A stretch of 64,000 bases of DNA from Macrostomum lignano (Eukaryota): positions 250,528 to 314,527 of the forward strand of contig NIVC01000864.1 of the NCBI GenBank assembly GCA_002269645.1. Reading direction: 5' to 3'. The translations under genes were made by a program, and so were the position numbers. The notes beneath the pieces were generated by a model. The model ran no database searches. It had not been told where the DNA came from and worked only from the letters and a program-made list of their open reading frames with translations. How positions within the stretch are numbered: position 1 is the stretch's first letter; each line of letters begins with the position of its first letter. Positions 1,380 through 63,811 of this stretch are shown in pieces.

Positions 1380-2525
1380 ATGCGGTTAAAAAAAAGCAAC
1401 TCAAACTTCTTGAAAGTTCTTCTAGCTGCTATCTGCATCCCGCTGAGTGCATCCAGCAAACTGCAGCTCACTGATGCCGGCTACTATCGGAACATGCTGA
1501 TTGTGGTGGAAGTGCCAGCAAATGGTTCGATTCCTGAGCTGCACTATTCTCAACTACTTCAAACTTTGCGGGTAAGCCATAAGGCATATTTTTACCGTAA
1601 ATACATAATACCAGGGGCGTCACCATGGAAAGGGGACCAGAGGGACCCACCACCCTACTTTGTGACCCGTTATGGAAATCAATAGTTTTACTCCAGGGGC
1701 CCCAAAATATAGCGTCTGCCGTCCCAGAATGTGTGCCTGCATGCTTGTGGTGCCAAAACGAGGAATTTAGTCCTGTGGAATTCTACCTGTAGAATTTCCC
1801 CCACCATAAAATCCATGGCGACGCTCCGGAATAACACTAAACTACTTGCTTTACCTCGCCCCAGACTGTCTTCCAAAGTGTCTCGGACATGATTGCGGAA
1901 CTCACTGAGCCAGTCGGACGCCGTTTGAGCTTCAGCGACGTCAGCGTGCTGGTGCCGAATCAGCTGGGTCGCCAACTCGCCAAGATCAGCTCAGAAATGG
2001 TTCAACTGCACCAGGCCACCTGGGAACGACGAGACCATGCCGATTTTCACGTCTCACCGGACTTTTACCCGGCCGACGATGGGCCAGTTTGGGAGAAGCC
2101 TGCCTGCGGAAAGCCAGCCAAGAAGATTATGCTGGCGGCTGAAAGTCTGTTCAACCACACAAGTACTAATGCATAAGCAGTATTTGTATGCGAACCACTC
2201 ACTGTTACGCCCTCTCTATTAAATGCAACCCAATTCCACCACTCAAATATCAAAACTGATGTGTTACCCGAACCGTTCCTCCCATGCAGTTGCCCGAGCT
2301 CTGACACTGCACTTCTCGCAATACCGCTGGGGGCTGTACATCGAAGCCCCTCTAGCCGGCCCGACGTATAAAGTACTGACACCAGAGGGTGAAGCGCGTC
2401 ATCGAGTCTCCTCCTGCAGCCCGGACATTCGGACAAACCTGTTAATAGCCAGCGGACCGGGCAGCGGACTCCCCTGCGACTTCAGCGACACCGCTGTATT
2501 CCGAACCTGTTTAACCTCTGAATAC
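1380..2525 (+). pseudogene. CLCA-like gene copy A, 5' part only (exons 1380-1571, 1865-2162, 2290-~2525)
   Basis: Signal peptide plus KLQLTDAGYY, RRLSFSDVSVLVP, HADFHVS...CGKPAKKI and FSQYRWGLYIE follow the CLCA N-terminal domain. GT/AG sites are phase-compatible. Exon 3 runs directly into the CLCA 3'-flank repeat. Confidence 0.8.
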
Positions 2526-17865: not shown

Positions 17866-18713
17866 ACAGGCACTTCTGTTGGCGGTAATTTTGATGCTCA
17901 TAAGCGTCAGAGTGCAGCAGATATTTGGAAAACTGTCTACTCTTTGAACCGGATTGTGTGTTTGGTCACTTTGTGGCGTGAAGAATAAATGTTTCTGTAC
18001 AATTCATATGTCAGCTTGTATTTCAACAATCAGCAGAGCTGCTGCAAGCGTTACACCTACCTTCTTTAGGCGGGAGTAGACCAGACGGATCTTCGACTGC
18101 AGGATTCCATTTGATTTCAAATATTTTGCTCGCGTCATTTACGTTACTTTCATAGATATCCATAACTTTTTCAGGAATAACACGACGTCTGTCAAAGTTG
18201 GTGTCCTCCGCTTGAACAGTCAAAGTGTTGATACGAGTTTGCATTCGGAACGGGTGCGTGATAAACACAGTGACAGCGTATTGACCAGCTTTCTGTACTG
18301 CATAGAGGGGTATTATGGCGCTGTATGCTTGTTTATCTGTACGAAGAAAATGTGAGTAATACGAGTTTTAAATCGTTATTTGAGAGTAGCAGGTTTAATA
18401 CAGATACTGAATGTTTAGTCTTTACTCACTGCGACGTTGTTGGAATATACAAAATCGAGCCACAATTCTGTGTCGCCTGATTTGAAAACTGCGTGCATGC
18501 GATACTGAATTTTGGGATCTAGTAGCAGATTCACACGGACATCGATTGAAGTCATACTTGACCATTTTCACATAGTTTGGTTTCACTTTAATGGTAGAAT
18601 CTTCAGGAAACCAGAATAGCGAATTTCCGGTTAAAACTAGCTGAGCTTGTGAGGCCGCCTGTCTGCGAATCCGGCGTGCGAGACCGCAGGTTCGCCAGCG
18701 TCCACTTTCCGCT
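17866..18713 (-). pseudogene. CLCA-like copy B (exons 18713-18430, 18336-18061, last exon from 17875)
   Basis: SGKWTL, VKPNYVKMVKYD and IKWNPAVEDPSGLL are paralogous to C, D and E. Small frameshifting deletions are present, and the last exon continues at 3454. Confidence 0.88.
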
Positions 18714-18834
18714 CTGTTGGAGTGGCGGGTTTGAGGCAAGGCGATTTCTATTGGTTTAAGTCTAAAAGTTTATGTAATTATGGGTCTTAGTAATTACCAA
18801 CTGCCTTAATAATTTATTTCTATTTTTGGCTCAG

Positions 18835-23150: not shown

Positions 23151-23507
23151 TGCTATTCATAATGTTAAGATCATTAAATCAAGACTTGCAATAGCATAAT
23201 TAAGGACTTTTCTTTCAGGTCACAGAAGGCAATATTTTAACTAAAGGCCATTTTGTTGTAGTGCGCTTGGAACAAATTGATCAGCTGATTTCCAGTATTT
23301 CTGCACAGTGTATTTGTAATTTTATCAATCTGAGCGCTTGCCCATCATGCGCAAATTCATACCACGGAACACGGAAAGAGAATTTTCCAGAAAACAAATT
23401 CAAGGCTACTTGCCAAAATTAAATGAGGAGGAGTGTTTATTTAGCGAGTTTCCAAGCCCAGAGACGACAAGGCATCTCCCAGGTCGCTGCTGACTGGAAC
23501 TGCTAGC

Positions 23508-26262
23508 TCACTGGATCAGCCACTGCTGTGCAGATACCGTGAGGACAGCCAGAGAGCAGACGGCTCCAGCACTGAACCACGCCAGATCCAGCTTTAGTTG
23601 AGCCGGCGTCAAGTTTCGTGACGACGACTTGGCCATGGAATTGGTCTTGTTCGGGTCGTTCGCCAAAGTTTGCGCCACGGTCCGGTGCATGTGTGAAGTC
23701 AATGTGCTGGCCGTAGTGGAAGGGAGTAGGCCTAATTGCTTTTCGTCTTCAGCGGCCAAGGGCTTCTTATCTTGAATGTACAATCTATCGATAGACACAC
23801 TGGACACGTTTGCAGCGGATATGGCAATCACTTTTATAAACATCGGAGGTTCATTGAGAGCCATATACTGATTGTAGATGTTCAACGAAGATTGGTTGGT
23901 GACAGCCAGTTCCGGACAGGAGTAATATCCGTTTACAGCGGTGCAGTTTCCACCTGTTTCTCTGTAGCGAAGACTGTAGACAGGCACATCTGTTGGAGGC
24001 AATTCGGATGAACATAGCGTTAAAAAGAGTGAAATGTGCATGACAGCTGTGCAACAAATACTCGTATTTGGGGCACTGTTTACTCTTTGAACCAGATGCC
24101 AAAGTGTGTTTTGGTTTTATGAAAAAATATTTTTCAATAAAATTCACATTTCAGCTTGTACTTTAGCAGAGCTGCTTCAAGCGTTACACCTACCTGCTTT
24201 AGGCGGGAGTAGACCAGACGGATCTTTAACTGGATTCCATTTGATCACAATTATTTTACTCGCATAATCTTTTCTGCTTATATAGATCGCCATGCTTGGC
24301 TCAGGAACAATACGACGTCTGTCAAAGTTGGGGTCTTCCGCCTGAACAGTCAAGGTGCCGCCAGACAATTGCATTCGGAACGGGGACGTGATAAACACAT
24401 CGACAGCGTATTGACGAGCTTTCTGTACTGCATAGAGTGGTACCATGGCACTGTATGCTCCTCTATCTGTACAAATGAAGTATGAGCAATATGCCTCTTA
24501 AATCGTTGTTTAACAACAATAGTTTTTGTAAAGCTGCTACTGAATTTTTAGTCTTAAATTAAATCGAGCCACTTCCTTGTTGCTTGCTGTGACAACTGCG
24601 TACATTTGATACTTGTGTTGAATCTGGGATCTTGGTAACAGATTCACGAAGACACCGATTCGAGTATCATACTTGACCATTGTCACATTATTTGGCTTCA
24701 CCCTGCACGTAGTATCTCTGGGCAGTAAGGCAAATTGGCTTCCTGTGATAACTATAGTCATTGTTGAGGCCGCCTGTCTGCGAATCCGGCGAGAGAGACC
24801 GACTGCGAGATTCGCCAGCGTCCACTTTCCGCTCTGTTGGAGTGGCGGGTTTGAGGTGAGGCGATTTCTATTGGTTTAAGCCTAAAAGTTAAATAGTCTT
24901 AGTCTTAGTAATTAACTGCTCTAATAATTATTTCTATTTTTGGCTTATCTGCTCCTGAAAAAGCATATTTAAATTGTAGTGAATGTTAAAAGTCAGTTTG
25001 AGTGCAACACACTGTTACAGTAGCTGTTAATATTTCACATTCTTCTGCGTTCTACTTTTGCCGTCGTAAAGTAATCCCTCCAGCAAGCTAGAGCAGTGGC
25101 TCATAATGCAAGTAAATTGGCTCAACTGACCTCTACCTCAGCGTCAGGAATTTGCACCGTCACGGATCCGACTGCAGCATCGACTGTGCAAATGGCGCTG
25201 CTGCCATCAGAGCAATTGAAAGTCCTACCGCTCGGCGACCGAAGCATGAGGCGCAGAGAGCCAACCTTGGCGGGATCGCTTGGCAGAAACAGCGAGAAGA
25301 CGAGGTTGCTGCGAGCACTGAAGTTGAATTCCACCGGATACCGTAGGTCAGAGGGAACTTGCCTCGAATCCAGCTGTGGGAACAAGGAACAGTTCGTACG
25401 GAGTCAAACTAAGATGGAAGACAATCGGAATGCAACCAGTGCACTAACTAAGCGCATTTGATTTATTTAGTACCTTAACTATACACAACACTAAAAATAG
25501 TTTGTCGCTTGAGTAGGTTATGTGACTGATTTCAGAAGAATCCCGTTGAGCATTTTTCATAATGCTGCAGGACCTCATCGGAGCTCTAATCTCACCCATT
25601 TCTCCCCTATCTCTATATCACCTCAATCACCTCACCTCACCTCTATATCACATAATTTTCGTTGGAATAATAACAATAGCGACTGTAAACAGTGAAAGGC
25701 TGCTTATTGCTAGTGTTAAGAAGACACTTTATTTGCTTCAATAATTAAGTAACTACGTAACTAGTAACGCATTACTACGTTTCGGCTTTCACGTCCCCTG
25801 AGAATTTTATCCCACGGTCAACAGCAGAATTAAAACCCTTATTCAGACAAAAAGAATTTGGCTGTTGGCGACGAATACAATAATAGATGGTGAATGAAGC
25901 GAAAAGTAATAATTTTTTGTCGAGCAAGCTTCACAATAGAATTCACCCCAACTCACGACGAGGGTCTTGTTCACGCCAGCGAGACCAGACTGTAGTGAGG
26001 TGAACTCCAGTATTAGTTTGGACGCTGCAAGCTTGCTGTTGACCGGACTATATAGCTTGCGAACGCCCGTGACGTCGGCAAGAAGCGACATCCGCATGTC
26101 CGCACTGTCACCGAACCGAATGGTGTCGACTCTAAGGCTCGTGTTAGATATCGCATCGATGGTAGAGTTCAGCTTGCTGCTGCAGCCTTCCTGACCATCT
26201 GAGACCAAAAGTATCTGACCCGTCGATCGATTAGTTGGGCTTGTTGGGTCCTCACCTAGCAG
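23508..26262 (-). pseudogene. CLCA-like copy C, 3' half (second vWA exon to C-terminus)
   Basis: Near-identical to copy E in exons and introns. The donor after ...VARFN is deleted at ~24555. The 5' half is replaced by the MACPF gene at 26293. Confidence 0.85.
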
Positions 26263-27841
26263 CTGGGTGATTTGATTGAGAAGTAGGGGATTCCTCCTTG
26301 ATCTTCGACGCTAGTTTGGGTGAACTCGGATTGGCTTGAGCTCTGAGATAGCTGGTTTTTCTGGATTATTGTGCTGACACGATTCTTTTCGGATTGTGCT
26401 GATGAGCTTTGATGTTCAGACTTTATCTGTCCGCCATAAAAAGGAGTGCTAACTTTGCTTATTGTCTGCAGGTGCCTGGACTGCAGTGACGCAAACATTG
26501 ACTGGAACTCTGTCTCGGCGATGCTGGCAAACTCCGCCACAGACTTTACTTTGTTCATCTTCGAAGTCTTTGTGATCTTCAACTGGCCGCCAAACTTTCC
26601 AGACCGAATAAAGTGCGTGCCCCAGCGAAGCAGGAAGTTCTGGTACTTGACGTCAGCGCCAACCGAGTAGTAGGACTCCGGCAAGCTCATGTAGTCCTTG
26701 AGATCAGCCAAGTTGATGTCTTGCGGCTTCATATCATCCAGAGTGATCTCGTACATGATGACGCTGACATACATGATGGCGAAAAGGTATTAGAAGCCCC
26801 CTGCCGCATATTGGAACTCTCAGTCTGAACATTTTCCGAGGCCGATTCACCAGATTTTACCGAGGACGATTCGCCTTAACCGGTCGCACTTGAAGCAGAG
26901 GAAATGCCAAAAAAGCTGACAGTTGCTGAAACGGAAGTGCTGTGCTTGCTGGCCTCACTGCGAAATAGATTCCTCTGTTTTGACAGGCCGGCCTTCTCTC
27001 TGATGTAGTTCATGTACTCCCCTCCAGACTGGAAGGACTTGGTCTCTGCCGTAGTCTCAAAGATGCCGAACACGTTCATCGAGTCGGGAACGTCTTTGTT
27101 TTGGAAGCTGGCCTTGTTGGAGCAGTAACGCTGCACTAGGCTGGCCCTGCGGCTCTCGATTTTGTAGAAGCCGCGACCGTCGAAGCCTACGCCCACGTAG
27201 GCGGCGGCTTCCAGGAGGTTCGGGCAGCGTGTCCCTGAGCAGCGAGCTTGCTGGAGTTGCAGGGACTACTTTTTGAATAGAATTGAACCGTGCAGCCGTT
27301 CATCAGCATCGGACCCACTCCCTTCGGATATAGGTACACCGGTACTTTCTCGTCCGTCATTTGCGGTATTTTGTTCGCCGGCCCGCTCAAAGTCTCCGTC
27401 ATCACCCATCCCGGAGGCTGGTAGTTTCCGAGTCCGTTAAAGCCCTGATCCGCCTTGCAGGCTGATGGAGCGAGTTCCCGCCTTCTGTGGTTGGAGGGAC
27501 CAGTCTTTGACCATTTTATTCATCGATTCCTGGGTGATGAGCGGATTCGGTGCGGTGCCGACAGACTTCATCATCTCGTTGAGCGTTTGTTCGTTCTGTT
27601 TTCTCAAATTGACCAAGCTGGTGATCAAATTGCCGCCGCCGCCACCAGCGCCGCCGCCACCGCCGCCGCCGCCGTTCAAGACTTTGTCTACAAGCGAGCT
27701 TACGACAGAGTTAATGGCAGCGTCTCTGGCTACGGTCATGATGGCAGCCTTGGATAGAAAGGGCGCCAACGCGACCGGCAAAGCCACAGCTGAGCAGAGC
27801 GACACCGCCAGCAATGCGAATGCAGCAGCGAGATGCCTCAT
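26256..27841 (-). pseudogene. Secreted MACPF pore-forming protein (perivitellin-2 67-kDa-subunit-like), frameshifted and 3'-truncated
   Basis: Signal peptide; CPNLLEAAAYVGVGFDGRG; MACPF signature YQNFLLRWGTHFIRSGKFGG; ends at the ...QGG motif. About 3 frameshifts plus a TAA at 26876. Confidence 0.85.
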
Positions 27842-32954: not shown

Positions 32955-34676
32955 CTAACGAAGTGCATCCAAAATAGCTACTGCAGCCTTGCGGACGGCT
33001 TTCTTGCGAAGGCCCGACAGCACTTCGATTACCTCCAGAAACGCCTCTAGGGCAGGGAGGTGCTGGAGGTTGAACGCGATGAAGACAATTACAAATGCAA
33101 TTATCGAGTCAGTAACACTGTCGAATGGGATGCTCGCACCGTTGACGAAAACGCCGCACCATTTTCCATCCTCTGTCAGAATTCTGACTGGCAGTGCGTC
33201 GCGAAGAATAATAGACGGGTCGACTCGCAACCGACCGAGAAGAAGAAAGACAGCCACAGGCAGCTTGTCCTCCTCTGAAACAACTGGCAATTCCACATAA
33301 TCCTTGCACAGCTTGAAATTTTTTAGCAACTGCCTTTTACTGTACACAAGCAACAAGGCGTTAATAATCCTGCTTCTCATTTCCGATGGACTTGGTGGAA
33401 GTACATAGTCAGTTTTGCTTCTGTTGTATGTCTGGATCATGAGATACGCCTCCTGCTGCAGTACTGCGATGTTTACCAGTGGCGCATATAAGGCAATTTC
33501 GTCACTAACCGTCAAATCTTGGCACCGCAATATTCGAATCGGAAACAGAGCCTGCATTTCGTTGAGAACGTCTGATATTGAAGAGTCATGATGAGTCTCG
33601 TTCAATCTCGTTCGACGAGCTTCGTGTGACGGTGGTACATCGGTATCGAACTCGCCGAAGTCAACGCTCTTCGCCATTGCACTGCCAGCATCGTCTGCAT
33701 CACTATCATCATCGCCTTCTTCTTCGATCAGATCTTCGTCGTCGTTGATACGCTGCTTGTTGGCTCTTTTAGCACGTGAAGCTATAATTTCATTGTCGTC
33801 ATCATCTTCCTGGCCTTCAACTTCCTTGTACTGCCGTTTATGCCTTTGGCTCACAGTAACCGCACTTGGGCCTGCAGCAGCTGCAGCAGCATTTGGTAGA
33901 ATTATACGCCGATGACCAAGTCGACCATGCTTCCGTCGCATCTCCTGAACCGTTGGGCTGCTCTTGTCGACAAAGTCGCCAACGAACCGGAGCTCTTTGA
34001 AACGCCGAATAAGCTTTTGGCGCCAAAAGCTTGAGCTCCCACTTAATGAGGTGTCCTTCAGTCCAGGATACGAAGTTACTATGGAAGTGCACACATCTGT
34101 TATCTGGCTAGATGACAGGTATGGTTCATTTGGCGACAGATAGTTCAAACAGATGTGATCGACGATGAATTTAAGGAACTTGTTGACAAACGTCGCGTTC
34201 ATTTTTAAATCGGAACCCTTTTCGGGGTGCATTCGTAGATCACGAAGGGCGTTGGCGAGATCGTCCATTCGTGGAAGCGAGTACACTTCGGGCCATGGAA
34301 GTGTAGTTGCAGCCGTAGCTGCTACAGCTGGATTTGGACTCAGAGCCTGTGTGCCTCGACTCGGTGTTGTGGCAATCTCGACATTGCGTATTTCGCTTTG
34401 CTGCTTTGGTGTAGTTGAAGGTTCTACAGGGCATGCACCGCAGCTTGGAAGCAACTCTCCAGAAAGAAGGAAGTACACAGTTCTACATTCCTTTGCCACC
34501 TCCGATATTAAATCATCGTCGTCGATTTCGAAACCGTCAGAAGTGACAATGCGAACATTTTCAACATCTGCAATGTCCAATTTTAAACAACCTTTGATGC
34601 GAAGGTCCGCCAAGGTCAGGCCAGAAGCTGGAAGGAGCTTCTTGCGCTCCTCTGAGCCGTTGCAGATTCGAAGCAT
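32955..34676 (-). CDS. EnSpm ORF2 (SAMD3-like) with an N-terminal CIDE-N/ubiquitin-fold-like domain
   Basis: Intact 573 aa. IVTSYPGLKD...FWRQKLIRRFKELR is typical of animal EnSpm ORF2. The N-terminus (RKKLLPAS.LTL...IVTSDGFEIDD) resembles CIDE-N. Confidence 0.7.
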   Translation of the reverse strand: MLRICNGSEERKKLLPASGLTLADLRIKGCLKLDIADVENVRIVTSDGFEIDDDDLISEVAKECRTVYFLLSGELLPSCGACPVEPSTTPKQQSEIRNVEIATTPSRGTQALSPNPAVAATAATTLPWPEVYSLPRMDDLANALRDLRMHPEKGSDLKMNATFVNKFLKFIVDHICLNYLSPNEPYLSSSQITDVCTSIVTSYPGLKDTSLSGSSSFWRQKLIRRFKELRFVGDFVDKSSPTVQEMRRKHGRLGHRRIILPNAAAAAAGPSAVTVSQRHKRQYKEVEGQEDDDDNEIIASRAKRANKQRINDDEDLIEEEGDDDSDADDAGSAMAKSVDFGEFDTDVPPSHEARRTRLNETHHDSSISDVLNEMQALFPIRILRCQDLTVSDEIALYAPLVNIAVLQQEAYLMIQTYNRSKTDYVLPPSPSEMRSRIINALLLVYSKRQLLKNFKLCKDYVELPVVSEEDKLPVAVFLLLGRLRVDPSIILRDALPVRILTEDGKWCGVFVNGASIPFDSVTDSIIAFVIVFIAFNLQHLPALEAFLEVIEVLSGLRKKAVRKAAVAILDALR

Positions 34677-35652: not shown

Positions 35653-38208
35653 TTATTGATCAATGTTTTGGCAATGTAGCATTGGATAATATTTTAAAGA
35701 AAGAAAAAGTTTCCCTTGATACATTAAAAATGGAATTGGCTGATGAAAAAAGTGCTGAGTAGGTTCAATAAATACTAAATGGTCATTATTCACAGTGCAT
35801 ATAAAACTGCTATAATGACAAGAAAATTTAGCATTCACTTTTTTACAAATAATTATCCACTTGTTGGAAAGTTGAATAATATGGCTAATTAATGCTAAAG
35901 CAATTCCAGTTGGTTCTAAAATTGGCAAACAATAACGGTAATTTAATGTTGGAGTCCGATATACAAACCCCTGATATTTTAGTTCATTAGTAGAAAGACA
36001 AATAGTGCCAATAATTGAGTCTGTATCTAAATTCATGTTGTTGCATAACTCAGTTTGTTCATCTATTGTCAATAGCATATTTAAGCTAATAGGATTTATA
36101 TTATGGCTCTTAATTGTACCTGGTTCATAGTGCTTAATGATAAGTGCCTTTTGAATTTGATATTGTTTTGCACATGTATAGGCAGGATTTTTGAAATTTC
36201 TTGCATGCCTGTTTATATTCTTAAGCAATTGATGATGAGCTTCACCTCGCATACACCATAAGTATTTAAGACCACTATAATAATGATAAAATTCAGGATA
36301 GTGACATATATAATGCAATTTACATTTATATTTAGGATTGAAGCCCGTGTTTCTATATATTAATTCTAATTGGCCAGAAATAAGAGATTGAAAATATTCT
36401 AAGTTTATGCTACTATCATATGGGGACAAAATTATGTCAAGAAACTGCCTGTGACAATTAAATAATATCCAAATATCATCATCCAACTCAAACAAATGTC
36501 CAAATAAAAGTCCAAAGTATTGTAGAATAACAATTATTTGATTAGAAGTACATGGTAGATGATAATTTTGTAAGTGATATTTATTTATTGTAGGAATACT
36601 GACTTCTTTAATCAAATTTAGTTGTTTGTTTATATAGTCTATACTAATATTATGATTTTGAATAATACTTAATAGAATAATACATATAACAACATGAGAA
36701 AACCCTTCAAACACATCATGCATTATATCAGGGGGGAAAAAATATTGAAAGTTAATATATGCTACACTTCTAAACACAGATGGTGAAATTAAACCATTAC
36801 TTAAGGATTTAAAATCTTCAATATATGATGAATTATCTCGATATTCAAATAGGAATAATGTACTTATAATTCTTCTAATCTAATGCTACAAAGCTGTTTA
36901 TAACCTATAAAACAAAATCTACAAATATAACCACTTGAAAACCAAGTTTGCATACCTAACATTCTATGTATTGATAAATTATCCCCAGTCATGAAAGCAG
37001 CAATAACAGGCATTTTTATCAAATTACTTATTTGAAATTCTTCAAAGTAAAGCTCATTCAGCTCTCTAATTAATGGAAATAAACAAAACTGTAAACCTTT
37101 CTTTTTAACATTTGAATCATTAAATACTGTTAAAAGAAAATATAAGTCTGAAGATGAACTAAGATATTCAGGGAAATTAAGAATAGTAAAGTATACTACA
37201 CATAATTTATGTTTTGTTTTGGCAGACCCAATAGGATTACATATTTCAATTTCATCTGAATAAAGTTTTATGAATATACCATTCTTATTTGTTAACAATG
37301 GACTAATATGTTCTTCAAAATAAGTAGACTTGAAAAAAAAATTTTCTTTGTTGGTTGCATTTAAATAAGAATTTAATAATATACTTAAGCAATGTCTCAT
37401 TTTTTATAATAGAACTAAGTGTTTCTTTTATTGGAATATATAGAATTTTTAATTTTGATTCTTCATCTATGATTTCAATGGGCTCAACAAAATTAAACTT
37501 GTTTTGTAAAATTTCAAATATTTTTTTATTACTTAATAGATGCTCTAATGAAAGGTCAATCATTTCTTGCAAATTTAATTTATTTTTATAAGAATTATAG
37601 CTGTTAACTATTGAAGGACATTCTTCTTTTAAAAATTGCTCAAATAACAAAAAATAGTCATCAGCAAACTTCAATACTATTTCCTTAACAAGTTCACATA
37701 ATTGATTAGATTTGCTTTTAGGAATTAAAAAGAAATGTCTAGACTTTAGATAAAAGTAAACAAAATTTTCAGCAAGATGTTTTCTTGTATTTTCACATAA
37801 AAAATCACTAGACATTTCAAATTCAGGGTCTTTTTTTTCATTTTCAACTTGGTTACAAATAGTAGATAATATGGCTATATCTATAGGCACAGCTTGCAAT
37901 TCATTTTCTAAAGGGTTTCCTAATAAGTCTAGAGTAGGGTTATTATGAACACAATTTGGCTGTAGAACTTGGTCTTGGGAAAAATTATCAACAACACTGT
38001 TTTTGTGCATACGATAGGCATGTGCTTGTAATCCTTCAATTGTAACACTAATATGGTAACATCCCCTAACTGGACATAAAAAATTGCTATTCCCAAAAGA
38101 ATGGTATAGTTTTATATGACTTATAAGCTTAAATAAATCCTTGTGTGTATGAAGACATATACTACATTGAAATAGTTTTGAAATTACATTTTCATCTCCA
38201 TTTAACAT
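35653..38208 (-). pseudogene. EnSpm transposase (C2H2 N-terminus), two frameshifts
   Basis: LYSDEIEICNPIG, GDNLSIH, CRFC, PPDIMHDVFEG, KLHYICHY and WCMRGEAHHQ motifs. Breaks at ~37330 (A-run) and ~36870. Confidence 0.88.
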
Positions 38209-39585
38209 ATCCTGGACAGTGGATAAGCCTACTAAATTCGTCGTTGTGGAATGGACAACGCGTAAAAACGTTTAAAAAGCACTAATTTTTAGGTTTGATC
38301 AGAACGAATTGCACGCAACAATCTAAATGTTCGAAGTTAGTAGAGTGAAACAAAAGTTCCCAACATATTTTTGATCTGTGTTAGAAATGCGCTTGTACCT
38401 GTTAAAAGGAATACAATATATAATTCCTTTAATTTAAGGCATTTAGAGCTTTCGATTGATGCAATTACATTTGACGGATAATTTTATTTGTGTTTTTATG
38501 CGGCAAAAAATACGGTGGTATAAAACCTAAATTTATTTCCAGTCCGATTTTCTCTATAAAATCTCGCGTGTGCTTAAAAAAATATCATTTGAGGGCACTT
38601 GAAAAAATTTCATTCGTTTTCTCTGACCAAAAAAATCGGACCTTCAGACATGAAGGTCCGCCTTCAGGCATGAAGGTCCGCATTATGCAATTCGGACCTT
38701 ATCCGGACCCATAAGATTTACAGTGCAGACGAATTTCCCCGCCGAGATTTTATCGCAGTGCAAATTTTCCCACGAGCGAATTGCATGCCGAGTTTTTTCC
38801 CGCCGAGCTTTGCCCGCAATGCTTTTTTCCTGCAGCGCATTTAGCCACACGGCAGATTTTGTTTGCATTACCTTCCCATAAAGTAAGTATTAATAAAGAG
38901 ATTTACACGATCAAAACGTTTTGATAGTAGTTAGTAACTGCAAATCAAATGCATATTCTTGGGGGGAAGCAATGCAGACAAAATCTAGCTGCGAAATGCG
39001 CAGGGAAATTCCTCGGTGGGAAAAAACTCGGCTGGAAATTCGCTCGCGGGCCATTCTCATGGACCCATTAGATTAGCATGAAAAAATTTAATTAAAAGTT
39101 TCACTTAAAGAGAAAACAGTGGCTTTAAAATCAATAAGATATTATTACCAAGAATTACTGATTTAAAAAACAACAAAAAGGGTTAAAGAAAAACAGCGAT
39201 TAATAAAAGTACATCTTGACATTTTTTAGCTCTTTCACTACGAAATTTGCTCTCTGCTTTGACATTTGCCTCCCAAAATACAACTTGAACCTGTTTTCTA
39301 AGCCTGACCGCCCTCAGGCCCAAAGACTATTTGCCGCTTACTGCCGCTCGAGCCGCCCTGTTTTGGAGTTTGGTCTAAATGTAGTCGCTGCATAAGTCTC
39401 TATTTTATACAACATTCAAATTAATGCACGAAGCTTAAAGCCGGCAGCTCAGCAGAGCTCAGCAGAGATCGAGAGGAGCGGCTTCGCTTCGAGTTGAGTT
39501 GCCTGCCAGCCCCAGTTCATCTCTTGCAGAGCCAACGCTCAGCATAAAATTTCTGTCAACTTTTATCTGCACAGAATCCTTAAAA

Positions 39586-41662
39586 ATGAGGCTAAAAAAC
39601 GTCAGCACAATCTTCATGACTTTTCTGGCTGCTTTTTGCATCCAGCTCGATGCGTCAAGCAAACTGCATCTCGCTGATGACGGCTACTATAACGACTTGC
39701 TAGTCTTTGTGCAAATATCTGCAGACGGCAACGTGCATGACAAGCAGCTGGATTCGAGGCAAGTTCCCTTTGACCTGCGGTATCCGGTGGAATTCGACGT
39801 CAGCGCTCGCAGCAACCTCGTTTTCTCGCTGTTTCTGCCAAGCGATCCCGCCAAGGTTGGCTCTCTGCGCCTCATGCTTCGGTCGCCGAGCGGTAGGACT
39901 TTCAATTGCTCTGGTGGCAGCAGCGCCATTTGCACAGTCGATGCTGCAGTCGGATCCGTGACGGTGCAAATTCCTGACGCTGAGGTAGAGGTGAGTTTAG
40001 CCAAATACGTGCATTGTGAGCCAATGTTCTCGCTTGCTGGAGGGGTTACTTTACGACGGCAAAAGTAGAACGCAGAAGAAAGTGAAATATTAACAGCTAC
40101 TGTAACAGTGTGTTGCACTCAAACTGACTTTTAACATTCACTACAATTTAAATATGCTTTTTCAGGAGCAGATAAGCCAAAAATAGAAATAATTATTAGG
40201 GCAGATAATTACTAAGACTAAGACTATTAAACTTTTAGGCTTAAACCAATAGAAATCGCCTTGCCTCAAACCCGCCACTCCAACAGAGCGGAAAGTGGAC
40301 GCTGGCGAACCTCGCAGTCGGTCTCTCTCGCCGGATTCGCAGACAGGCGGCCTCAAACATGCATGTAGTTATCACTGGAAACCCGTATCACTTTTTTCCT
40401 AAAAATTCTATCATTAAAGTGAAACCAAACAAAGTGAAAATGGTCAAGTATGATACTTCAATCAGTGTTGTCGTGCATCTATTACCAAGACCCCTAACTC
40501 GGCATCAGCTGTACGCAGATGTCAAATCGGGCAACACAGAAGTGGCTCGATTTTGTCTACTCGAACAACACGGCAGTGAGTTAAGACTAAACATTTAATA
40601 GCTCGATTTAAATGTTAGTCTCAAACACCGCATATATCCCACATTTGCTTCGTACAGATTCTGGAACATTTATTGCCAAGGTACCTCTCTATGCAGTACA
40701 GAAAGCTGGCCAGTATCATGTCAATGTGCATATCACGCACCCCTACTCATCTGAACGGTCTGCCGGCACTTTGACTGTTCAGGCGGAGGACCCCAACTTT
40801 GACAGACGTCGTATTGTGCCTGAAACAGTTACGGGGATCTATAAAAGTAACTTGAATAACGCTAGCAAAAAATTTGAGATCAAATGGAATCCAGTCGAAG
40901 ATCCGTCTGGTCTACTCACGCCTAAAGCAGGTAGGTGTAACGCTTGCAGCAGCTCTGCTGAATGTTGAAATACAAGCTGAAATATGAATTGTGCAGAAAT
41001 TTTGTTCAAGCCACTAAGTTACCAAATACACAATCCGGTTCAAAGAGTAAACAGTTTCTCAAATATCTGCTGCACAGCCGTCATGCAAATTTCACTGACT
41101 CTGACGCTTATGAGCATTCAAATTACCTCCAACAGAAGTGCCTCTCTACAGCATTCGCTACGAAAAATCAGGGGACAGCTGCACCACTTCAAAGGGCCGT
41201 AGCTATTACTTCTGTCCGGAACTGGCTGTCACCAACCAATCTTCGGCGAACATCTACAACCAGTATATAGCTCTGAATGAGCCTCTAATGCGGGTATCAG
41301 TGATTGCCATTTCCGCTGCAAACGTGTCCAGTTTTTCTAGCAAATATTTGCATATTCATGCCAGGACGATATCGGATTATCTGCCGGTCGATGTTGACAA
41401 AAAGCAATGGTGCGGACTCAACACTACGACGAGCACATCGACCCCGCACAACTCTCTCGACCCGACAGTAACGCAAAGTTTAACGAATGACCCGAACAAG
41501 GCCAAGTCAACAGTCGACTCCACGACCAAGTCGTCGCCACGAAACTCGACGCAGGCGAAATCGTCGGCTCAACTAAATGTGGATTTGTCGTGGCTCAGTG
41601 CGGGAACCGTCTGCTCTCTGGCTGTCCTCACGGTATCCGCACAGCAGTGGCTGATCCAGTGA
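39586..41662 (+). CDS. Internally deleted 'mini-CLCA' copy D, 497 aa predicted (exons 39586-39990, 40287-40575, 40658-40930, 41136-41662)
   Basis: All splice sites are canonical and phase-compatible, with no stops. Signal exon is fused in frame to the post-vWA exon at CAGCTG 39745-39750. AATAAA at 41729. Confidence 0.8.
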
Positions 41663-41728: not shown

Positions 41729-41734
41729 AATAAA
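41729..41734 (+). promoter_or_regulatory. Candidate polyadenylation signal of copy D
   Basis: AATAAA 67 nt after the stop codon. Confidence 0.55.
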
Positions 41735-46055: not shown

Positions 46056-47420
46056 GTCTCAAAGGTCAAGCTTCAACCGGCGGTCATCGTCAGCTATCTG
46101 AGACTAAGACCGCAGCGATCATTTTCACCAGCAGGACCAAGTGGCAGATTCGGCCGCTCACGCTTTACGGAAGGGAAATCCCCTTCTGCAAGCAGACTAA
46201 ATGTATTACTCTGGACCACAAGCTGAACTGGTCACCCCACGTTTAAGCAAAAGCTAAAGAAGGTCCTCGCAGTCCTCGCGCAACTTCGCAGGGCTGTCGG
46301 CACCACCTGGGGGCTCACCCCCAAGCGCTTCTGGTGGATCTACACTGCAATGGTTAGGCCTGCTATCTCGTATGGCGGCCTAATCTGGGCTAGCACCCTG
46401 CAGATGAAGACCTGTCTAGAGGCCCTTAGGAGAGCGCAAGGGCACGCATGTCGCACGATCATGAGCGCCCCTCCGTCTGCTCCATACGATGGCCTCAACG
46501 CCTTCCTCAACATTCTTCCGCTGGACATCTTTGTCCGCAAGGAAGCGGCTAAGACTGCCCGCCGTCTAATTGACACTGGCATTCGTATCCTGCCCCATAG
46601 GACCATGGCTAAGCGCAAGCTCCTGCCCCACGCCGACCTCTGCCTCAAAGACTTAAGAGACGGCGGCGGGCTCCACGTCTTATCTGACGGTGAACCCCGC
46701 ACTCTCAACCTCTTTCAGCGCTACAAGGTCACCATCCCCTCTAGGGATGCTGCCAATGACCACAGGAATTTCCAGGAGGGCCATTGCTACACGGACGGAT
46801 CCATCAAAGACGGCCGCGCCGGCTTTGGGGTCTGCATCATCATCAACGGCCGCTTCATTGCCACGCATGCTCAGCACACTAGCAGACTCTCCACGGTCTT
46901 CCAGAACGAAGTCCTTGCTATCAGCTCTTGCGCTGCAGAGCTGAACGCAAAGGGTACGAGAGGAGAGACTATTGTCATCCACTCCGATAGCCAGGCCCTT
47001 TGCTACACCACAACGAACTCCCGGACAGTTGCCGACTGCGTCCGGCATCTCAACCTCCTGGCCAGTAGCAATACTGTCAGGCTGAAGTGGATCCCAGGGC
47101 ACGCAGGGTTTCCGGGGAACGAGCTGGCGGACACCATCGTCAAGAGGGGCGGCTCTGGCTCTTTCTTTGGCCCTGCCCCCTTGGTCCCTATGCCCTCGAC
47201 AGTCATCAATCGTCAGATCACCCAAAACTGCCGGCAATCCCGTGCCGCGGTTCCTCGCCCGTCTCGCAGGCTCAGAAACGTTCTTCTGAACCAAAATCGG
47301 AAGGATATTCGAGCCCTTGTCGTGACCCTTACCGGCCATGTCTACCTCGCCAGACACTCCTTCCTCCGAGGCGACCTCGAGAGCGAACTTTGCCCTTTTT
47401 GCGAGTACGACAATGAAGAT
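46056..47420 (+). mobile_element. LOA/R1-like LINE remnant: 36 bp of ORF1 joined to RT C-terminus and RNase H
   Basis: TWGLTPK...MVRPAISYG, YTDGS, VFQNEVLAI, HSDSQA and WIPGHAGFPGNELAD motifs. Confidence 0.85.
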
Positions 47421-49747
47421 GCTCTGCTCAGCTCAGCACTCTTATTCTCTCCCTCCAATCTCTCCCCATCTCTGTCAAGGACTACTCAAGTAACATATAC
47501 TCGTATATGGGACGCTACACTCGAACTCTATGGTAAATGTCGCCGAAAACTACACTACAGAGATAGGAGGTTTCAATTTTTTCATCACAAAAATTGTTAT
47601 TGCTTTTGATAGGAGAAAGACCCAATGTTCATCTTTCGATATGTTGTGCCTTCCTTATAGCTCTATTGAGATTCATAAAGCTTATTTATTTATAGTGTAT
47701 TTTTCGGCGAAAAGCCTCTGACTTTTCTGCAGCTCAAAAGAGCGCCGTTTCTAATTTCATTTGACCTGCCTGATGAGATACCAAATTTGCTGCAAAGGCA
47801 AGCAAAGTACGCTGTGGTCTATCGAGGAGACAGGTGGTTTGCCACTGAGCCAGGAAGCCATCTTGCTCACTTGTATGACGGTTGCCAATTGGGCAACTAC
47901 AAGCTTGAAGAGCGGAAGAGCAAACCAAAAATCTGCATTTGGAACATTATCCTCACCTATGAGAACAACACGGGCTTTTTCTACATTGACCACTGTTGTA
48001 TCCCTGCAGCCCCCGGCCCGGCAGTAGGGTGGTCCTACAGGGTACAGTACAATCGGGTCCTTGCTAAGCCTGCGCGCGGGCGCTAGGGCGAGCACTTCCC
48101 CTGACAGTCTCGGGCGTCAGGACGCTCCCACGCAGCCTTTCCACGCGTCGGGACGCAGTGGTGCGGGCCGCCTTCAGCGAGGCGTTGGGACGCACTGGCT
48201 GGCGTAGAGGCGTAGAGGCGTACGGTAGGTATCCTACTGCCGTATCAACCCCAACTAGCTGAGTCGGCGTCCGGACACACGGACTCTCTGCCCCCCTAGG
48301 CAACCGAAAGAAAGAAGACAGGACGCGCACTTACTTAGTTGGCAGCTGTCGCTCAGGGCTCAGGAAGATGGCCTTCTTTGGTGTATTTCTTTATCAAAGG
48401 GGGTCTGTATAACTTGGGCTGTAGATAGCTCTGACAAAAACTGAATTCACAGAGAGGGAACAGTCGAGACGCGCACCGCTCCAACCCGCCGCGAGCGATG
48501 TTAAATAGCACACGCCCGCGGAGGGGGGAGGGCCATGCGCTCTCAACTCCACCACCCCACCAACCCCCCAGCCAACCCCCCCCCCCGGGGACGGCCACCA
48601 AGCCCGCCGCCGGCTCAGCCAATCACTACGCGACTGGCTGGCCGCGACCAATCGCCACGCGGGGCGAGCAAACAAATGCCAAAACTTAAGCCTCTGGCTG
48701 CGGCAACGCAAAAAGGGGGTGAATAACAAAAACTGTAAACAACTAGTTGAGGGGTGACTCAGCCCGCTGGGGCTAGGTGCACAGGCACCGCAGAAGTGCA
48801 CAACACAACACCCCGCCTCCCAACAAAAGGAAGAAGCTCATACGAGCCAGTAACGCTGATTACAGAAACAAATGACAACGAATGACACCACAGCTGCACA
48901 ACCTGCACCGCACATGGGCAAGGGGTTCAAAGCCTGCTTGACCTACATGACTGAAACCACGCGTACATGAAATAAAACAAACAGATGAACCAATGATGAC
49001 AAAAGAAATTAACGTTTGATGCCGCAAAAATTTGACCATTGACGACGCAACAAGATTTATGGAATTCCGACACCAATGATTTCACGATGAACGACGCAAA
49101 AGGGTTTAATGATAAAGGATCAGAGCTAGTCACCGATCTCCACCGCACCGTCCCTCTGCACATCCCTGCCGAGTCGGCTGCCCTTTCTCGTCCCTGCGCC
49201 GTTGACTCTCGACACCTGGCCTGGGTCCGGGGTTCCCGCGCCGGCGTCGGTGTAACCAGATTTCAAGCTTCTGTCCGGTGACCGCTTGGCGTCCGCTGGA
49301 ACCCGTTTGGCCTGGGACTATCAGCTCAGTGGAGCACGCCGCTGCTGCTCACCCGGCCGCCGCTATGGCTGCCCATTCTGGACGGCCAAGTGCTCGCCAG
49401 CCGTGCACCTCCCGCCTCCAGTCTCCCGGCTGCCTCTCTACCTAACCCTCATACCACCCGTACGGTAACCCATCCGCATACGACTAATCCGAAAAATACG
49501 ATACACCCAACCCCCGCACCAGGGACAGGGAAACGAACAACCGGACACGCCCGACAGGGCCTGCACCCCCAGCCCAACCCACACTCACACCCTACTAGCA
49601 CTCGCACGCCACCACTCGAGCACAACAGCGCAGCAGCGCCTGGACCTGGCCCGCACCTAGCAGCTCGAACCGAGGGATCACCACCTTCCGCATCACTCGA
49701 GCTGCTCGCTTTAAACATTCGCGTTTCCAACCGCTCCGACGACCGCG

Positions 49748-50577
49748 TCAATTGGACCACGTCACTGAAATGTCCCGGCGCAGAAACTTGAGCACTTGAA
49801 GTGTCACCGCCGTCAGATAACGCCTCGGCTCTTCTCGCCGCACCCTAAACAGGTCAGCCAACTCCTCAAACACGTTCACGATCTCTTCCTCCTCGCCCTT
49901 CAGCAATGCCGTTCTCAGACTCCGGTGCAGCTCCACAAATCTCGTTGTGCTCGGTAGCGGTAGCTCCTCCATCTCGACTGTCGTCGCCCCGACCGGTACC
50001 AGCTTCCAAGCCTCGACATCCGGCAGGTCCTCCCCGTCTGTCTCCATCTCTCCGACCTGGTCTGTTTCGTCGTCGCTGATAATGATGCAGTAGCCGCTGT
50101 CTGGCGCATAGCTTCGCTCGAATGACTGACGAAAACCCTGCTCCTCGGCCTCCCAGCCGGGCGGCCGACTTCCGTCGCTGACGACCGACTCACTGTCGGT
50201 ATCCCCGGGTTCGTCGTCTCCACGGAAGGCGTCCGCATCCGACTGCTCGTCCTCACTCGGCATGTCCTCATCTTCCAGCCTGATCGCTTCCAGGATGTCC
50301 TCTGGCACGGGAATGTCTGACGGGGGTTGAACCTGTCTAGCCAACTCTACCGCCGCGCTGAACGAGATTGACGAATCACCGTACATGTCATACAACCACC
50401 GCCGAAATGGGCAACCGAGAATTTCATACGCGACGTTGAGGGCTTTGCATTTCTCTTCTGCGAATGCCCGGTCCGGGTGCTTGTCCGGGTGATACTTCAG
50501 GGCTTGCCGCCGATAGGCTCTCTTGATTGCAGTTGCCTCCACCCCTGGTCGATCTCCAGTTCGTCGTACAAGGACAT
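49748..50577 (-). CDS. J-domain (Hsp40-type) protein with acidic linker and helical LEDGF-IBD/TFIIS-N-like tail, directly 3' of Gypsy pol
   Basis: MSLYDELEIDQG + VEATAIKRAYRRQALKYHPDK...AYEILG...RRWLYD; HPD is intact. The ATG at 50577 needs one extra G in a G-run at ~50545. No introns. Confidence 0.8.
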
Positions 50578-52864: not shown

Positions 52865-52866
52865 TA

Positions 52867-59568: not shown

Positions 59569-62500
59569 TCACTGGATCAGCCACTGCTGTGCAGATACCG
59601 TGAGGACAGCCAGAGAGCAGACGGCTCCAGCACTGAGCCACGCCAGATCCATCTTTAGTTGAGCCGACGATTTCGTCTGCGTCGAGTTTCGTGACGACGA
59701 CTTGGCCGTGGAATTGGTCTTGTTCGGGTCATTTGCCAAAGTTTGCGCCACGGTCCGGTGGACGTGCGAAGTCAATTGTTTGGTGGTCTGCGTATGATGT
59801 ACAATATGTACATTGCGTATGGGCATACTGAACTTATGGTTTGTCACGCTGGTCAATGTTCTGGCCATAGTGGAAGGGAGTAGGCCTAATCGCTTTTCGT
59901 CTTCAGCGGCCAAGGGCTTCTCATCTTGAATGTACAATCTATCGATAGACACACTGGACACGTTTGCAGCGGATATGGCAATCACTTTTATAAACATCGG
60001 AGGTTCATTGAGAGCCATATACTGATTGTAGATGTTCAACGAAGATTGGTTGGTGACAGCCAGTTCCGGACAGGAGTAATATCCGTTTACAGCGGTGCAG
60101 TTTCCACCTGTTTCTCTGTAGCGAAGACTGTAGACAGGCACATCTGTTGGAGTCAATTCGGATGAACATGAGCGTTAAAAAGAGTGAAATGTGCATGACA
60201 GCTGTGCAACAAATACTCGTATTTGGGGCACTGTTTGCTCTTTGAACCAGATGCCAAAATGTGTTTTGGTTTTATGAAAAAATATTTTTCAATAAAATTC
60301 ACATTTCAGCTTGTACTTTAGCAGAGCTGCTTCAAGCGTTACACCTACCTGCTTTAGGCGGGAGTAGACCAGACGGATCTTTAACTGGATTCCATTTGAT
60401 CTCAATTATTTTACTCGCATAATCTTTTCTGCTTATATAGATCGCCATGCTTGGCTTAGGAACAATACGACGTCTGTCAAAGTTGGGGTCTTCCGCCTGA
60501 ACAGTCAAGGTGCCGCCAGACAATTGCATTTGGAACGGGAACGTGATAAACACATCGACAGCGTATTGACGAGCTTTCTGTACTGCATAGAGTGGTACCA
60601 TGGCACTGTATGCTCCTCTATCTGTACAAATGAAGTATGAGCAATATGCCTTTTAAATCGCTGTTTAACAACAATAGTTTTTGTAAAGCTGCTACTGAAT
60701 TTTTAGTCTTCACTTACTGTAATATTGTTCAGATAGATTAAATCGAGCCACTTCCTTGTTGCTTGCTGTGACAACTGCGTATATCTGATACTTGTGTTGA
60801 ATCTGAGATCTTGGTAACAGGTTCACGAAGACACCGATTCGAGTATCATACTTGACCATTGTCACATTATTTGGCTTCACCCTACACGTAGTATCTCTGG
60901 GCAGTAAGGCAAATTGTCTTCCTGTGATAACTATAGTCATTGTTGAGGCCGCCTGTCTGCGAATCCGGCGTGCGAGACCGACTGCGAGATTCGTTAGCGT
61001 CCACTTTCCGCTCTGTTGGAGTGGCGGGTTACTATTGTTTGGGAATCCTTAAAGTTGACGGTTCTTAGTACTCGTAATTAACTGCCTAAACTATACCCCC
61101 CATTTCGAATTTTTTGCTCCTGAAAGAGCATATTTAGAATTTAGTAACACACTGTTACAGTAGCTGTTAAAATATTGGCTTTTTGCTTTGGCACGTAAAT
61201 TGGCTCAACTGACCTCTACCTCTGCGTCAGGAATTTGCATTGTCACGGATCCGACTGCAACATCAACTGTACAAACGGCACTGCTGCCTCCAGAGCAATT
61301 GAAAGTCCTACCGCTCGGCGACCGAAACATGAGGCGCAGAGAGCCAACCTTGGCGGGATCGCTTGGCAGAAACAGCGAGAAGACGAGGTTGCTGCGAGTA
61401 CTGACGTCGAATTCCACCGGATACCGCAGGTCAGAGGGAACTTGCCTCGAATCCAGCTGTGGGAACAAGGAACAGTTCGTACGGAGTCAAACTAAGATGG
61501 AAGACAATCGGAATGCAACCAGTGCACTACCTAAGCGCATTTGATTTATTTAGTAACTTAACTAGACACAACACTAAAAATAGTTTGTCGCTTAAGTAGG
61601 TTATGTGACTGATTTCAGAAGAATCCCGTTGAGCATATTTTCATAATGCTGCAGGATCTCATTGGAGCTCTAATCTCACCCATTTCTCCCCTATCTCTAT
61701 ATCATCTCTCCTCCATCTCTCCCTCGCGTATTTTCCATCTTTTGCATCCTCTCTCCTTTATTTTACTTATCAATTTAAAATTTAAACTTTCATTTTTAAT
61801 TTCGACCGATACTTGGTAAGCAAAATAAAGGTAGATCAAAATGAGAGCTAAAGCTCAAAGAGGGTCCTGATATCTTAGCCTGATATAATAGCTGGCTTTC
61901 AGAGTTTTTACGTTACGTTAAAACATCATTTACGTTGGGATAATAACAATAGCGACTGTAAAAAGTGAAAGGCTGCTTATTGCTAGTGTTAAGAAGACAC
62001 TTTATTTGCTTCAATAATTAAGTAACATAATGCATTACTACGTTTTGGCTTTCACGGCCCCCTGAGAATTTTATCCCACGGTCAACAGCAGACTTAAACC
62101 CTTACTCAGACAAAAAGAATTTGGCTGTTGTCGATGAATACAATAATAGATGGTGAAAGAAGCGAAAAGTAATAAATTTTTGTCGAGCAAGCTTCACAAT
62201 AGAATTCACCCCAACTCACGACGACGGTCTTGTTCACGCCAGCGAGACCAGACTGTAGTGAGGTGAACTCCAGTATTAGTTTGGACGCTGCAAGCTTGCT
62301 GTCGACCGGACTATATAGCTTGCGACCGTCCGTGACGTCGGCAAGAAGCGACATCCGCATGTCCGCACTGTCACCGAACCGAATGGTGTCGACTCTGAGG
62401 CTCGTTTTCGATATCGCATCGATGGTAGAGTTCAGCTTGCTGCTGCAGCCTTCCTGACCATCTGAGACCAAAAGTATCTGACCACTCGATCGATGAGTTG

Positions 62501-63624
62501 GACTTGTTACGTTCTCACCTAGCAGCTGGGTGATTTGATTGAGAAGTAGGGGATTCAGTCAGTGGTACCTGACCTGGACTATGGCTTGACTAAGAATCTG
62601 ACTGTGCGTAAATCTGTTAAATGACCAAATCACTGACCTTCATAGCCTCTTGAACAGCTCCACCGATGCAGGTGCTTCCTCCGGCAGTCAGTTTCGAGAC
62701 GGATTGCATCAGCTGACGTCGAACAGCCGGTGAGTCAACCAGGATGAAATTTTGCAGCACAGTGGGTCCGCTAGTAAAGCTGATCAGGGCGCACTCTGAC
62801 CCGGTCTTCAGAGTGAAGGCAATGTAATTGTTCACTGCATTAATCAAATTTTGCATTCGGTTGTCCTGAATGGGTCCAAAATGAGTTAGAATGAGTTATT
62901 GGTGGATAGTAATCTTTGTGTACTTTTGAAATTGACTTTTTAATTGAATAAATATAGTCACCTCTTTTGAGCATGTCATTATGAAAAAACTCTTCCACTT
63001 GATCCCAAAAATTTGAAAAGGTTACAAAGTTACAAAGAGCAGAGCATGGAAAGGAAGTGATGCAACTGAGACAAACCAAGCGGCTTCTCACCGAACGCAT
63101 GCTACTCGATGTATCCATGACGATCACAACACGGTCTCTTTTGGGTTCAACCACTAGACGAAAGTTGAACTTTGAGTTCACTATAGTAGCAGAGCTGATA
63201 GGCCGTAGAAAATCCTCGTGGTCTCTGATGACCTCCGCAGCGCTGCGTGCATTGCAAAATTTGTTGAGTAAGTTGTCGGCATCCTTGTTGTGCCTGTGCC
63301 TGGGGTCGGAGACCTTAAAGTCCGCATCGCAGAAGCGGGTCACTCCGGCGCTGTAGGGCTCGAACAGGAACGAGGCAACGTTGGAGTACGCAGGCTCGGT
63401 CACCACGATTTTGCAGTTGGGTTCGCCGAATTTGCAGCTGCGTCCGGTTTGATTGCCGCTGGCCACTTCCAGCTTCACCTGCAGGTCCGGGTTGCAGGAA
63501 GAGAGCCTGGGAAGAACTCTGTTATACGAATCCTTGCTCTTCTGTATCGGGTTACTCAATGGGTCTTCGCTGAACAGGCCCCAGCGGAACTGCGAAAAGT
63601 ACAGAGCCATAGTCCTGGCCACCG
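59569..63624 (-). CDS. CLCA: CLCA-like copy E (CLCA domain, vWA, beta-rich/FN3-like region, S/T stalk, hydrophobic tail); 5' exons beyond the window
   Basis: RWGLFSE, HN.DADNLLN.FC..RS, VMDTSSSM (MIDAS), GGSTCIG and VSDG motifs. The seven visible exons are phase-compatible and lack stops. Confidence 0.88.
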
Positions 63625-63811
63625 CTGTGGGATGTGCGGATCAGGGTGGAGCCGTGGCAGCAATGGGGAAAAGCGTGGCTTGTTAAAGTTGAGGGACTTT
63701 TTTAACTCAATCAAGTTTCTTAATTGTTTTGTCTCGACATGAAAATATTTGAAGAAAAAAATGTTAGCTGGCTCATACTTTTCCGCTTCAGTTCTTTTAT
63801 TCATGGCCGAC

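Follow-up and report, generated by a model that had tools for sequence, protein, structure and literature searches.

A small family of domain-deleted CLCA-like genes in Macrostomum lignano with a shared deletion junction and an open reading frame in every copy

The window, by which we mean the whole 64,000-nucleotide stretch of Macrostomum lignano DNA analyzed here (contig NIVC01000864.1, positions 250,528 to 314,527), contains CLCA-like copies that we label A to E. The gene under study, copy D, is the mini-CLCA copy of the window and lies on the forward strand at 39586-41662 (290113-292189 of the contig). Its four exons (39586-39990, 40287-40575, 40658-40930 and 41136-41662) have AG/GT boundaries throughout, its introns are all of the GT..AG type, and the spliced open reading frame of 1494 nt encodes 497 amino acids without an internal stop. 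The proximal upstream region and 5'UTR (39465..39585) come from the full-length CLCA-like parent and align to the full-length relatives F and L004. The 5' part of exon 1 (39586..39744) carries the start codon, a predicted signal peptide (hydrophobic residues 5-23) and the first 53 residues of the CLCA N-terminus, and is 93% identical to residues 28-80 of the paralogue P0024. It is followed by a deletion junction (39745..39746), where the BLAST segments overlap in a 2-bp microhomology, CA, that is present in both parental sequences. The 3' part of the exon, exon 1b (39747..39990), consists of the last G of a former acceptor AG and of the former post-vWA exon; it encodes residues 54-135 and shares 93-95% amino acid identity with copies C and E. 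Exon 2 (40287..40575, residues 136-231) includes a conserved RRIRR|QA site at 40329-40349, exon 3 (40658..40930, residues 232-322) encodes a predicted beta-sandwich, and exon 4 (41136..41662, residues 323-497) encodes the last beta-sandwich, a Ser/Thr/Pro-rich stalk (41369-41578) and a putative C-terminal hydrophobic anchor (41585-41641), ending with the stop codon at 41660-41662. An AATAAA polyadenylation signal (41729..41734) lies 67 nt 3' of the stop, in a flank that is 96% conserved in the paralogue L1.

The product of D is identical over its full length (100%) to PAA75763.1 (hypothetical protein BOX15_Mlig029287g1, M. lignano), and mini-CLCA products are thus already in GenBank as hypothetical proteins. 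The splicing confirmed an earlier note on the window, which had described four in-frame exons giving 497 residues without stops and followed by AATAAA. The GenBank annotation of the Mlig_3_7 assembly was built from StringTie/TACO assemblies of RNA-seq data and a de novo transcriptome, and not ab initio (PMC5730564). Since the annotated coding sequence equals our spliced model exactly, it provides indirect evidence that D is transcribed and that its splice sites are used. Searches of full-text literature and supplements returned no expression data for Mlig029287, Mlig010296, Mlig016394, Mlig013914 or Mlig016365.

The remaining CLCA-like copies differ in completeness. Copy A (1380..2489, forward strand; P0015, PAA75759.1) belongs to a divergent lineage and is a 5' fragment with CLCA_N exons only, and copy B (~17866..18831, reverse strand) is an isolated two-exon tail fragment. 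Copy C (23371..26280, reverse strand) is a 5'-truncated pseudogene that comprises the last vWA exon and the tail; it lacks the 5' half of the gene, and a 24-bp deletion removed its exon-2 donor. That A, B and C are broken, as had been noted, is therefore correct for all of them. The coding divergence between C and E is 3.3%, and C carries one disabling deletion besides the 5' truncation and no stops; as a yardstick of decay for the mini genes it is only partly informative. Copy E (59569..63625, reverse strand; matching P0004 and P0024) is a CLCA-like gene of the full-length type that is intact up to the contig end. As window position 64000 is the end of NIVC01000864.1, E is cut by the assembly and not by biology, and only a C-terminal piece of 275 aa (PAA75764.1) is annotated for it in GenBank. 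The intact full-length relative that we refer to as F is Mlig013914.g1, at locus L005.

Several repeats and unrelated reading frames surround these copies. Two inverted arrays of a 37-bp satellite, at 19187-19982 (21.5 copies) and 30707-32037 (35.9 copies), bracket about 10.7 kb that contains copy C, and 3' of this copy are a 57-bp satellite and a tandem repeat of 36 bp (20630-21653 and 22272-23148). Between D and E (46350-57767) and close to copy A (4851-6002), coding remnants of retrotransposons (RNase H, RT_RNaseH, integrase and RVT_1) point to elements of the LTR type. The long open reading frames at 8464-9879 and 15592-16551, both on the forward strand, gave weak, sub-threshold Pfam matches to Endonuclease VII and double-jelly-roll-like families, and may be remnants of a large DNA element. 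Just upstream of D lie two intronless annotated reading frames on the reverse strand: one at 32955-34676, of 573 aa here and 572 aa in GenBank, with a borderline N-terminal CIDE-N match, and one at 35653-36777, with no Pfam match. The segment 28001-30000 has a very strong purine/G skew (GC skew 0.60, AT skew 0.30) and includes a short AG-rich tandem repeat at 29286-29392.

Alignment of the mini protein to P0024 (PAA49495.1), a full-length E-type paralogue with Pfam matches to CLCA at residues 57-333 and VWA at 357-522, revealed what D has lost. Residues 1-53 of the mini correspond to residues 28-80 of P0024 (93% identity), and residues 55-497 correspond to 549-1009 (64% identity over 472 aligned columns). 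The 468 residues in between (81-548) are absent; the VWA domain lies wholly within them, and about the first 24 residues of the CLCA_N match are kept. A Pfam search of the 497-aa product gave no PF08434 match at E<=1 and no VWA or fn3 match, and the sub-threshold RibLong and PAAT-like matches were noise only. The alignment and the Pfam search thus bear out the earlier description of D as an intact CLCA derivative without the protease and vWA domains. A profile with full-length rows matched the human CLCA1 VWA structure 6PYO (E=4e-18) in a search of PDB, so the parents are genuine CLCA-like proteins; this search matched the vWA domain of the full-length rows only, and the tail had no match in it. 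The intron positions and phases of D are identical to those of the full-length E and F, and the remaining parts are homologous; D descends from CLCA genes. A HMMER profile search against 1.84 billion representative proteins returned nine hits, all from M. lignano, and found no homologue of the tail elsewhere.

The HExxH motif is absent from the mini and from the CLCA_N region of all seven flatworm paralogues that carry this region. Full-length paralogues without it are P0005-7, P0009, P0012, P0015, P0016 and P0020, as well as E in the window (~63.1-63.6 kb), and the CLCA_N segment before the conserved RWG reads LYFSQF (LYFSQFRWG) in the full-length paralogues. Judged by these residues, the "protease" domain of the M. 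lignano-clade CLCAs appears to have been catalytically dead before the deletion.

The predicted features of the product are those of a surface or secreted protein. Its hydropathy profile has a signal-like segment at residues 5-23 and a hydrophobic segment at 473-491 that is preceded by a Ser-rich region and followed by six residues only. At the level of motifs, this C-terminal segment resembles a GPI signal and would serve as the anchor. Residues 401-470 are 41% Ser/Thr/Pro, and the product has seven N-x-S/T sequons. The retention of a signal peptide, stalk and anchor, proposed earlier, is thus borne out as predictions from hydropathy and composition. A single R-x-R-R site, RRIRR|QA at residues 150-156 (40329-40349), is invariant in the minis, E and F, and the divergent P0016 (34% identical) carries RRFRR|QA at the same site. 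In the AlphaFold2 (AF2) model the site falls in a linker of low pLDDT; it may be a convertase-type processing site, possibly replacing CLCA self-cleavage. The model, built from a 9-sequence alignment, had a mean pLDDT of 56, with residues 175-400 all-beta at a pLDDT of 65-90; a model from a 4-sequence alignment (pLDDT 31.8) was discarded. Foldseek searches against PDB returned contactin FN1-FN3, cytokine-receptor FN3 pairs and SiiE BIg (E 1.7e-9 to 1e-6, whole-chain TM 0.15-0.2). Together, AF2 and Foldseek support, at moderate confidence, the "beta-rich/FN3-like" character that had been assigned to this region.

D is not the only gene of its kind. Two further minis of 493 and 485 aa (PAA57396.1 and PAA57394.1) are annotated head-to-head, 11 kb apart, on NIVC01002494.1, and the loci L006 and L007 encode the same domain-deleted architecture. 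The junction AAGCAGCTGGAT is identical at D, L001, L002, L006 and L007, that is, at five assembled loci on four contigs with the same intron positions. D, L1 and L2 represent three sequence types that are 85-87% identical pairwise across the gene, with an exon divergence of 10-11%. L007 duplicates L002 at 100% identity, owing to redundancy of the assembly, and L006 is 97.6% identical to L002. As the junction is common to three diverged types, the deletion occurred once, before the duplications, and is neither unique nor recent; the view of D as a one-off new gene of this window was not borne out. Intron positions, splice sites and the AATAAA are conserved across the mini copies, none of which has a stop codon. 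The 57-bp and 36-bp repeats found 3' of copy C also flank the minis on NIVC01002494.1 (L001, 6.3-8.2 kb and 13.5-20.2 kb), with a 57-bp array of more than 6 kb. Their presence beside both copy C and these minis implies that the duplicated units have their 3' flank in common.

We then asked what the three types reveal about selection. Pairwise dN/dS values among D, L1 and L2 were 0.59-0.71 by NG86, with upper bounds of the bootstrap confidence intervals at 0.85-1.00, 0.75-0.94 by ML, and 0.75-0.97 overall by ML/YN00. Exon 1b (residues 54-135) was the most constrained segment (dN/dS ~0.25-0.3), and exons 2-4 gave 0.6-1.0 (NG86), 0.9-1.35 (ML) and 0.9-1.4 (ML/YN00). As far as substitutions go, the ML/YN00 values, both overall and for exons 2-4, are indistinguishable from neutrality. 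The full-length E and F have the same pattern as the minis (omega ~0.8-1.0), indicating that the tail evolves fast throughout the family and that dN/dS does not single out the minis. The evidence from the reading frame was stronger: among D, L1 and L2, 8/8 exon indels were multiples of three vs 3/19 in introns (Fisher p=7e-5). The introns hold 16 out-of-frame indels in 583 bp, and the exon indel density is about six-fold lower. In simulations that placed 75-80 substitutions at random, the frame stayed open in 6-7% of the trials per lineage. Selection on the minis finds support in the state of the reading frame, and is not clear from dN/dS. The earlier suggestion that the gene may be kept by selection agrees with these signs of a preserved frame, with all eight exon indels in frame, and is equivocal for dN/dS (0.6-0.7 by NG86, 0.75-0.95 by ML). 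The dN/dS ratio, which had been proposed as a check, came out at 0.6-0.95 pairwise and ~1 in exons 2-4, the same as between the full-length paralogues.

Sequence exchange between copies complicates these estimates. D 39745-40316 is 95-98% identical to copy C (25376-24800), after which the identity drops to ~78%. This tract looks like gene conversion or recombination between inverted neighbors 13 kb apart, with copy C as the likely conversion partner of exon 1b and intron 1 of D. L006 is a mosaic of D and L2, and in the 5' region all copies, the full-length ones included, share 96-100% identity. Owing to such conversion mosaics, the lineages are not independent; the mosaics violate the assumptions of both the dN/dS and the simulation tests, and conversion, with full-length copies and pseudogene C among those involved, could help to keep reading frames open without selection on the mini itself.

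The strongest rival explanation builds on this point: the minis would be young, functionless relics, in essence transcribed pseudogenes, whose reading frames are open by chance and by conversion from full-length paralogues that are themselves under selection. The clear conversion tracts between D and C and in L006 are what such a history would leave. So are an ML dN/dS of 0.75-0.97 overall and ~1 in exons 2-4, and the setting of D in a region rich in transposable elements and satellites that holds several broken copies. However, the equally high dN/dS of E and F means that a high value is no mark of a dead copy in this family, and copy C, which is nearest to D as a conversion partner, is a broken gene itself. 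Three diverged types have remained without stops, their exon indels are all in frame against the 16 out-of-frame indels in the introns, and all splice sites and the AATAAA are conserved. We consider it unlikely that the minis are relics.

A more adaptive version of a functional family carries, in our view, comparably low odds. Here the minis would form a lineage-specific surface family under diversifying selection, freed from CLCA_N and vWA for a role in recognition, adhesion or as decoys. The same tentative proposal would set the variable beta-sandwich exons 2-4 (dN/dS ~1 or more) against a conserved first module and anchor. If it is true, the minis may function in reproduction, in adhesion of the epidermis or in immunity, or may act as decoys for C-terminal fragments that stem from full-length CLCAs, and they would constitute a natural experiment on the CLCA C-terminal part alone.

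The origin of the shortened gene could be traced at nucleotide resolution. D reads CAGCTG at 39745-39750, and the splice acceptor of copies C and E (cccacag|CTGGAT) falls within the same hexamer; on the minus strand, the exon begins at 25373 in C and at 61456 in E. Sequence reading confirmed the earlier note on both counts. The DNA homology of D to C and E starts exactly at 39745, and upstream of this position D matches exon 1 of full-length paralogues. As the 5' end of E lies beyond the contig, L004 and L005 served as left-hand parents for breakpoint mapping. Over 39465-39746, D shares 96.5% identity with F in the upstream region and in exon 1 (L005 4116-4396), and from 39745 onward D matches F from 12460, so that the interval absent from D spans ~8.06 kb in F. 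The full-length exon 1 extends beyond the breakpoint by 27 nt (L004) to 36 nt (copy A); across the breakpoint, L004 reads ...GAGAAGCA|CTATGCTCATCTACTTCATGTGCTGCAG|gtgagg. The left parent reads AAGCA|CTATGC and the right parent cccaCA|GCTGGAT, and the parental overlap at the join is CA only (2 bp). In our own calculation, a random-join model gives an overlap of at least 2 bp with a probability of ~0.16, and the overlap would be compatible with any end-joining route. The join created a new codon, Gln54, from the CA of a parental His codon and the G of the acceptor AG.

CAGCTG as a hexamer microhomology was ruled out: the left parent reads AAGCACTAT, and the hexamer derives almost wholly from the right parent. 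Thus, the deletion proposed earlier stood, with its breakpoints now mapped to the nucleotide, and the microhomology attributed to it shrank to the CA common to both parents. Likewise, the joining of a "signal exon" to the post-vWA exon proved right, but not as a whole exon, since the full-length exon 1 runs 27-36 nt further. Overall, the loss of CLCA_N and vWA by one genomic deletion, from exon 1 to the post-vWA exon, is well supported by the parental alignments. Just past the junction, at about 10160-10195 of L001, L1 reads CAGCTGGATTTGAGGCAGCTGGATCC, with a second CAGCTGGAT, and is 15 nt (5 aa) shorter than D there, which points to a secondary rearrangement beside the original join.

The position of the breaks bears on an alternative in which no DNA deletion took place and an exon-skipping cDNA was reinserted or used as a template for conversion. 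The 3' break lies at the post-vWA exon's acceptor, 1-3 nt within the intron, and a breakpoint within 3 nt of a splice acceptor is what such an RNA-mediated fusion would predict. The 5' break, however, lies inside exon 1, at AAGCA|CTAT, where the sequence has no GT and the exon-1 donor is still 27-36 nt further downstream; all three downstream introns are kept, and the product retains at least one base of the intron, the G of the acceptor AG. With three introns retained and a 5' break that is not a donor, we rejected this origin as highly improbable. A mis-join or collapse of CLCA paralogues during assembly, to which the highly redundant and repeat-rich nature of Mlig_3_7 (PMC5730564), the 100% duplication of L002 as L007 and the end of the window at a contig end might lend credence, is scarcely conceivable given that three types with a divergence of 13-15% over the gene, spread over four contigs, have the same junction, each type with an exactly matching RNA-derived gene model.

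Our preferred reading, to which we assign a probability of about 0.7, is that D belongs to a small, M. lignano-specific family of domain-deleted CLCAs that arose by a deletion of ~8 kb, followed by duplication and conversion, and that encodes an anchored surface product. The ancestor would have been a full-length gene with a signal peptide, CLCA_N, vWA, a beta-sandwich tail, a stalk and an anchor. A single ~8 kb deletion fused exon 1 at codon 53/54 with the 3'-terminal bases of the intron that precedes the post-vWA exon; the fusion was in frame, gave rise to a new Gln codon and has a 2-bp overlap, as is typical of end joining. From its parent, the shortened gene kept the promoter-proximal region, the signal peptide, the three downstream introns and the poly(A) signal; it was then duplicated and has exchanged sequence with its paralogues by gene conversion. 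We infer a product that enters the secretory pathway and carries some three FN3/Ig-like beta-sandwich modules on a stalk rich in Ser and Thr, with a GPI-like C-terminal anchor to hold it at the cell surface and a possible cut at RRIRR|QA. Such a protein would most likely be a fast-evolving module for binding or adhesion at the surface, or else a partner or decoy of the C-terminal fragments of its full-length paralogues. In short, we regard the mini-CLCA family as real and probably functional.

The function of the C-terminal portion of CLCA proteins is poorly understood. A duplicated and apparently maintained gene that encodes this portion with a signal peptide and an anchor shows that the portion can persist as a protein of its own, and the minis offer a handle, in M. 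lignano, on how it acts without the vWA and protease-like domains. The locus also provides a clean, nucleotide-resolved case in which an in-frame deletion from an exon to an intron boundary, followed by duplication and gene conversion, yielded a new architecture. Otherwise the event is an ordinary one, in a fast-evolving, lineage-restricted cluster of a highly duplicated genome.

Metazoan CLCA proteins, such as human CLCA1, CLCA2 and CLCA4, combine a zincin-like CLCA_N domain, a vWA domain and a beta-rich/FN3 C-terminal part. The mini descends from this family; its first 53 residues and its whole 443-aa tail are homologous to the full-length M. lignano CLCA-like paralogues, and it resembles the family in its predicted surface or secreted topology with a C-terminal anchor. 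CLCA2 has a transmembrane anchor, and CLCA4 a GPI anchor. Unlike these proteins, the mini has neither CLCA_N nor vWA, the two defining domains, and outside M. lignano no sequence similar to its tail was detected. According to two published accounts (PMC11231702, PMC10669480), CLCA1 engages TMEM16A through the vWA/MIDAS surface and CLCA_N is a self-cleaving metalloprotease; with both domains absent, the mini can act neither through vWA/MIDAS nor through CLCA_N. Loss of the active site has precedent, as CLCA lineages repeatedly lost it by substitution of HExxH in CLCA_N (Lenart et al. 2013, PMC3650047), a study that makes no mention of flatworms. The full-length flatworm paralogues, which read LYFSQFRWG and have no HExxH in CLCA_N, would fit this pattern. 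The two cases differ in that the former are point substitutions in an intact domain, whereas the mini lost the whole domain.

A counterpart of the mini in vertebrates is the C-terminal cleavage fragment of CLCA proteins, as the mini corresponds approximately to the part C-terminal to vWA. Its RRIRR|QA, a putative cleavage site, lies where processing would release an anchored C-terminal fragment. The mini differs from this fragment in being encoded by a gene and not produced by autoproteolysis, and its motif is convertase-like and not one of zincin self-cleavage. Truncated CLCA genes are also found in mammals; these, such as human CLCA3P, keep N-terminal parts and are regarded as pseudogenes or as sources of truncated secreted products. 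The mini and CLCA3P have in common the partial loss of the canonical architecture. In contrast to CLCA3P, the mini keeps only the C-terminal part and the signal peptide, and it has been duplicated.
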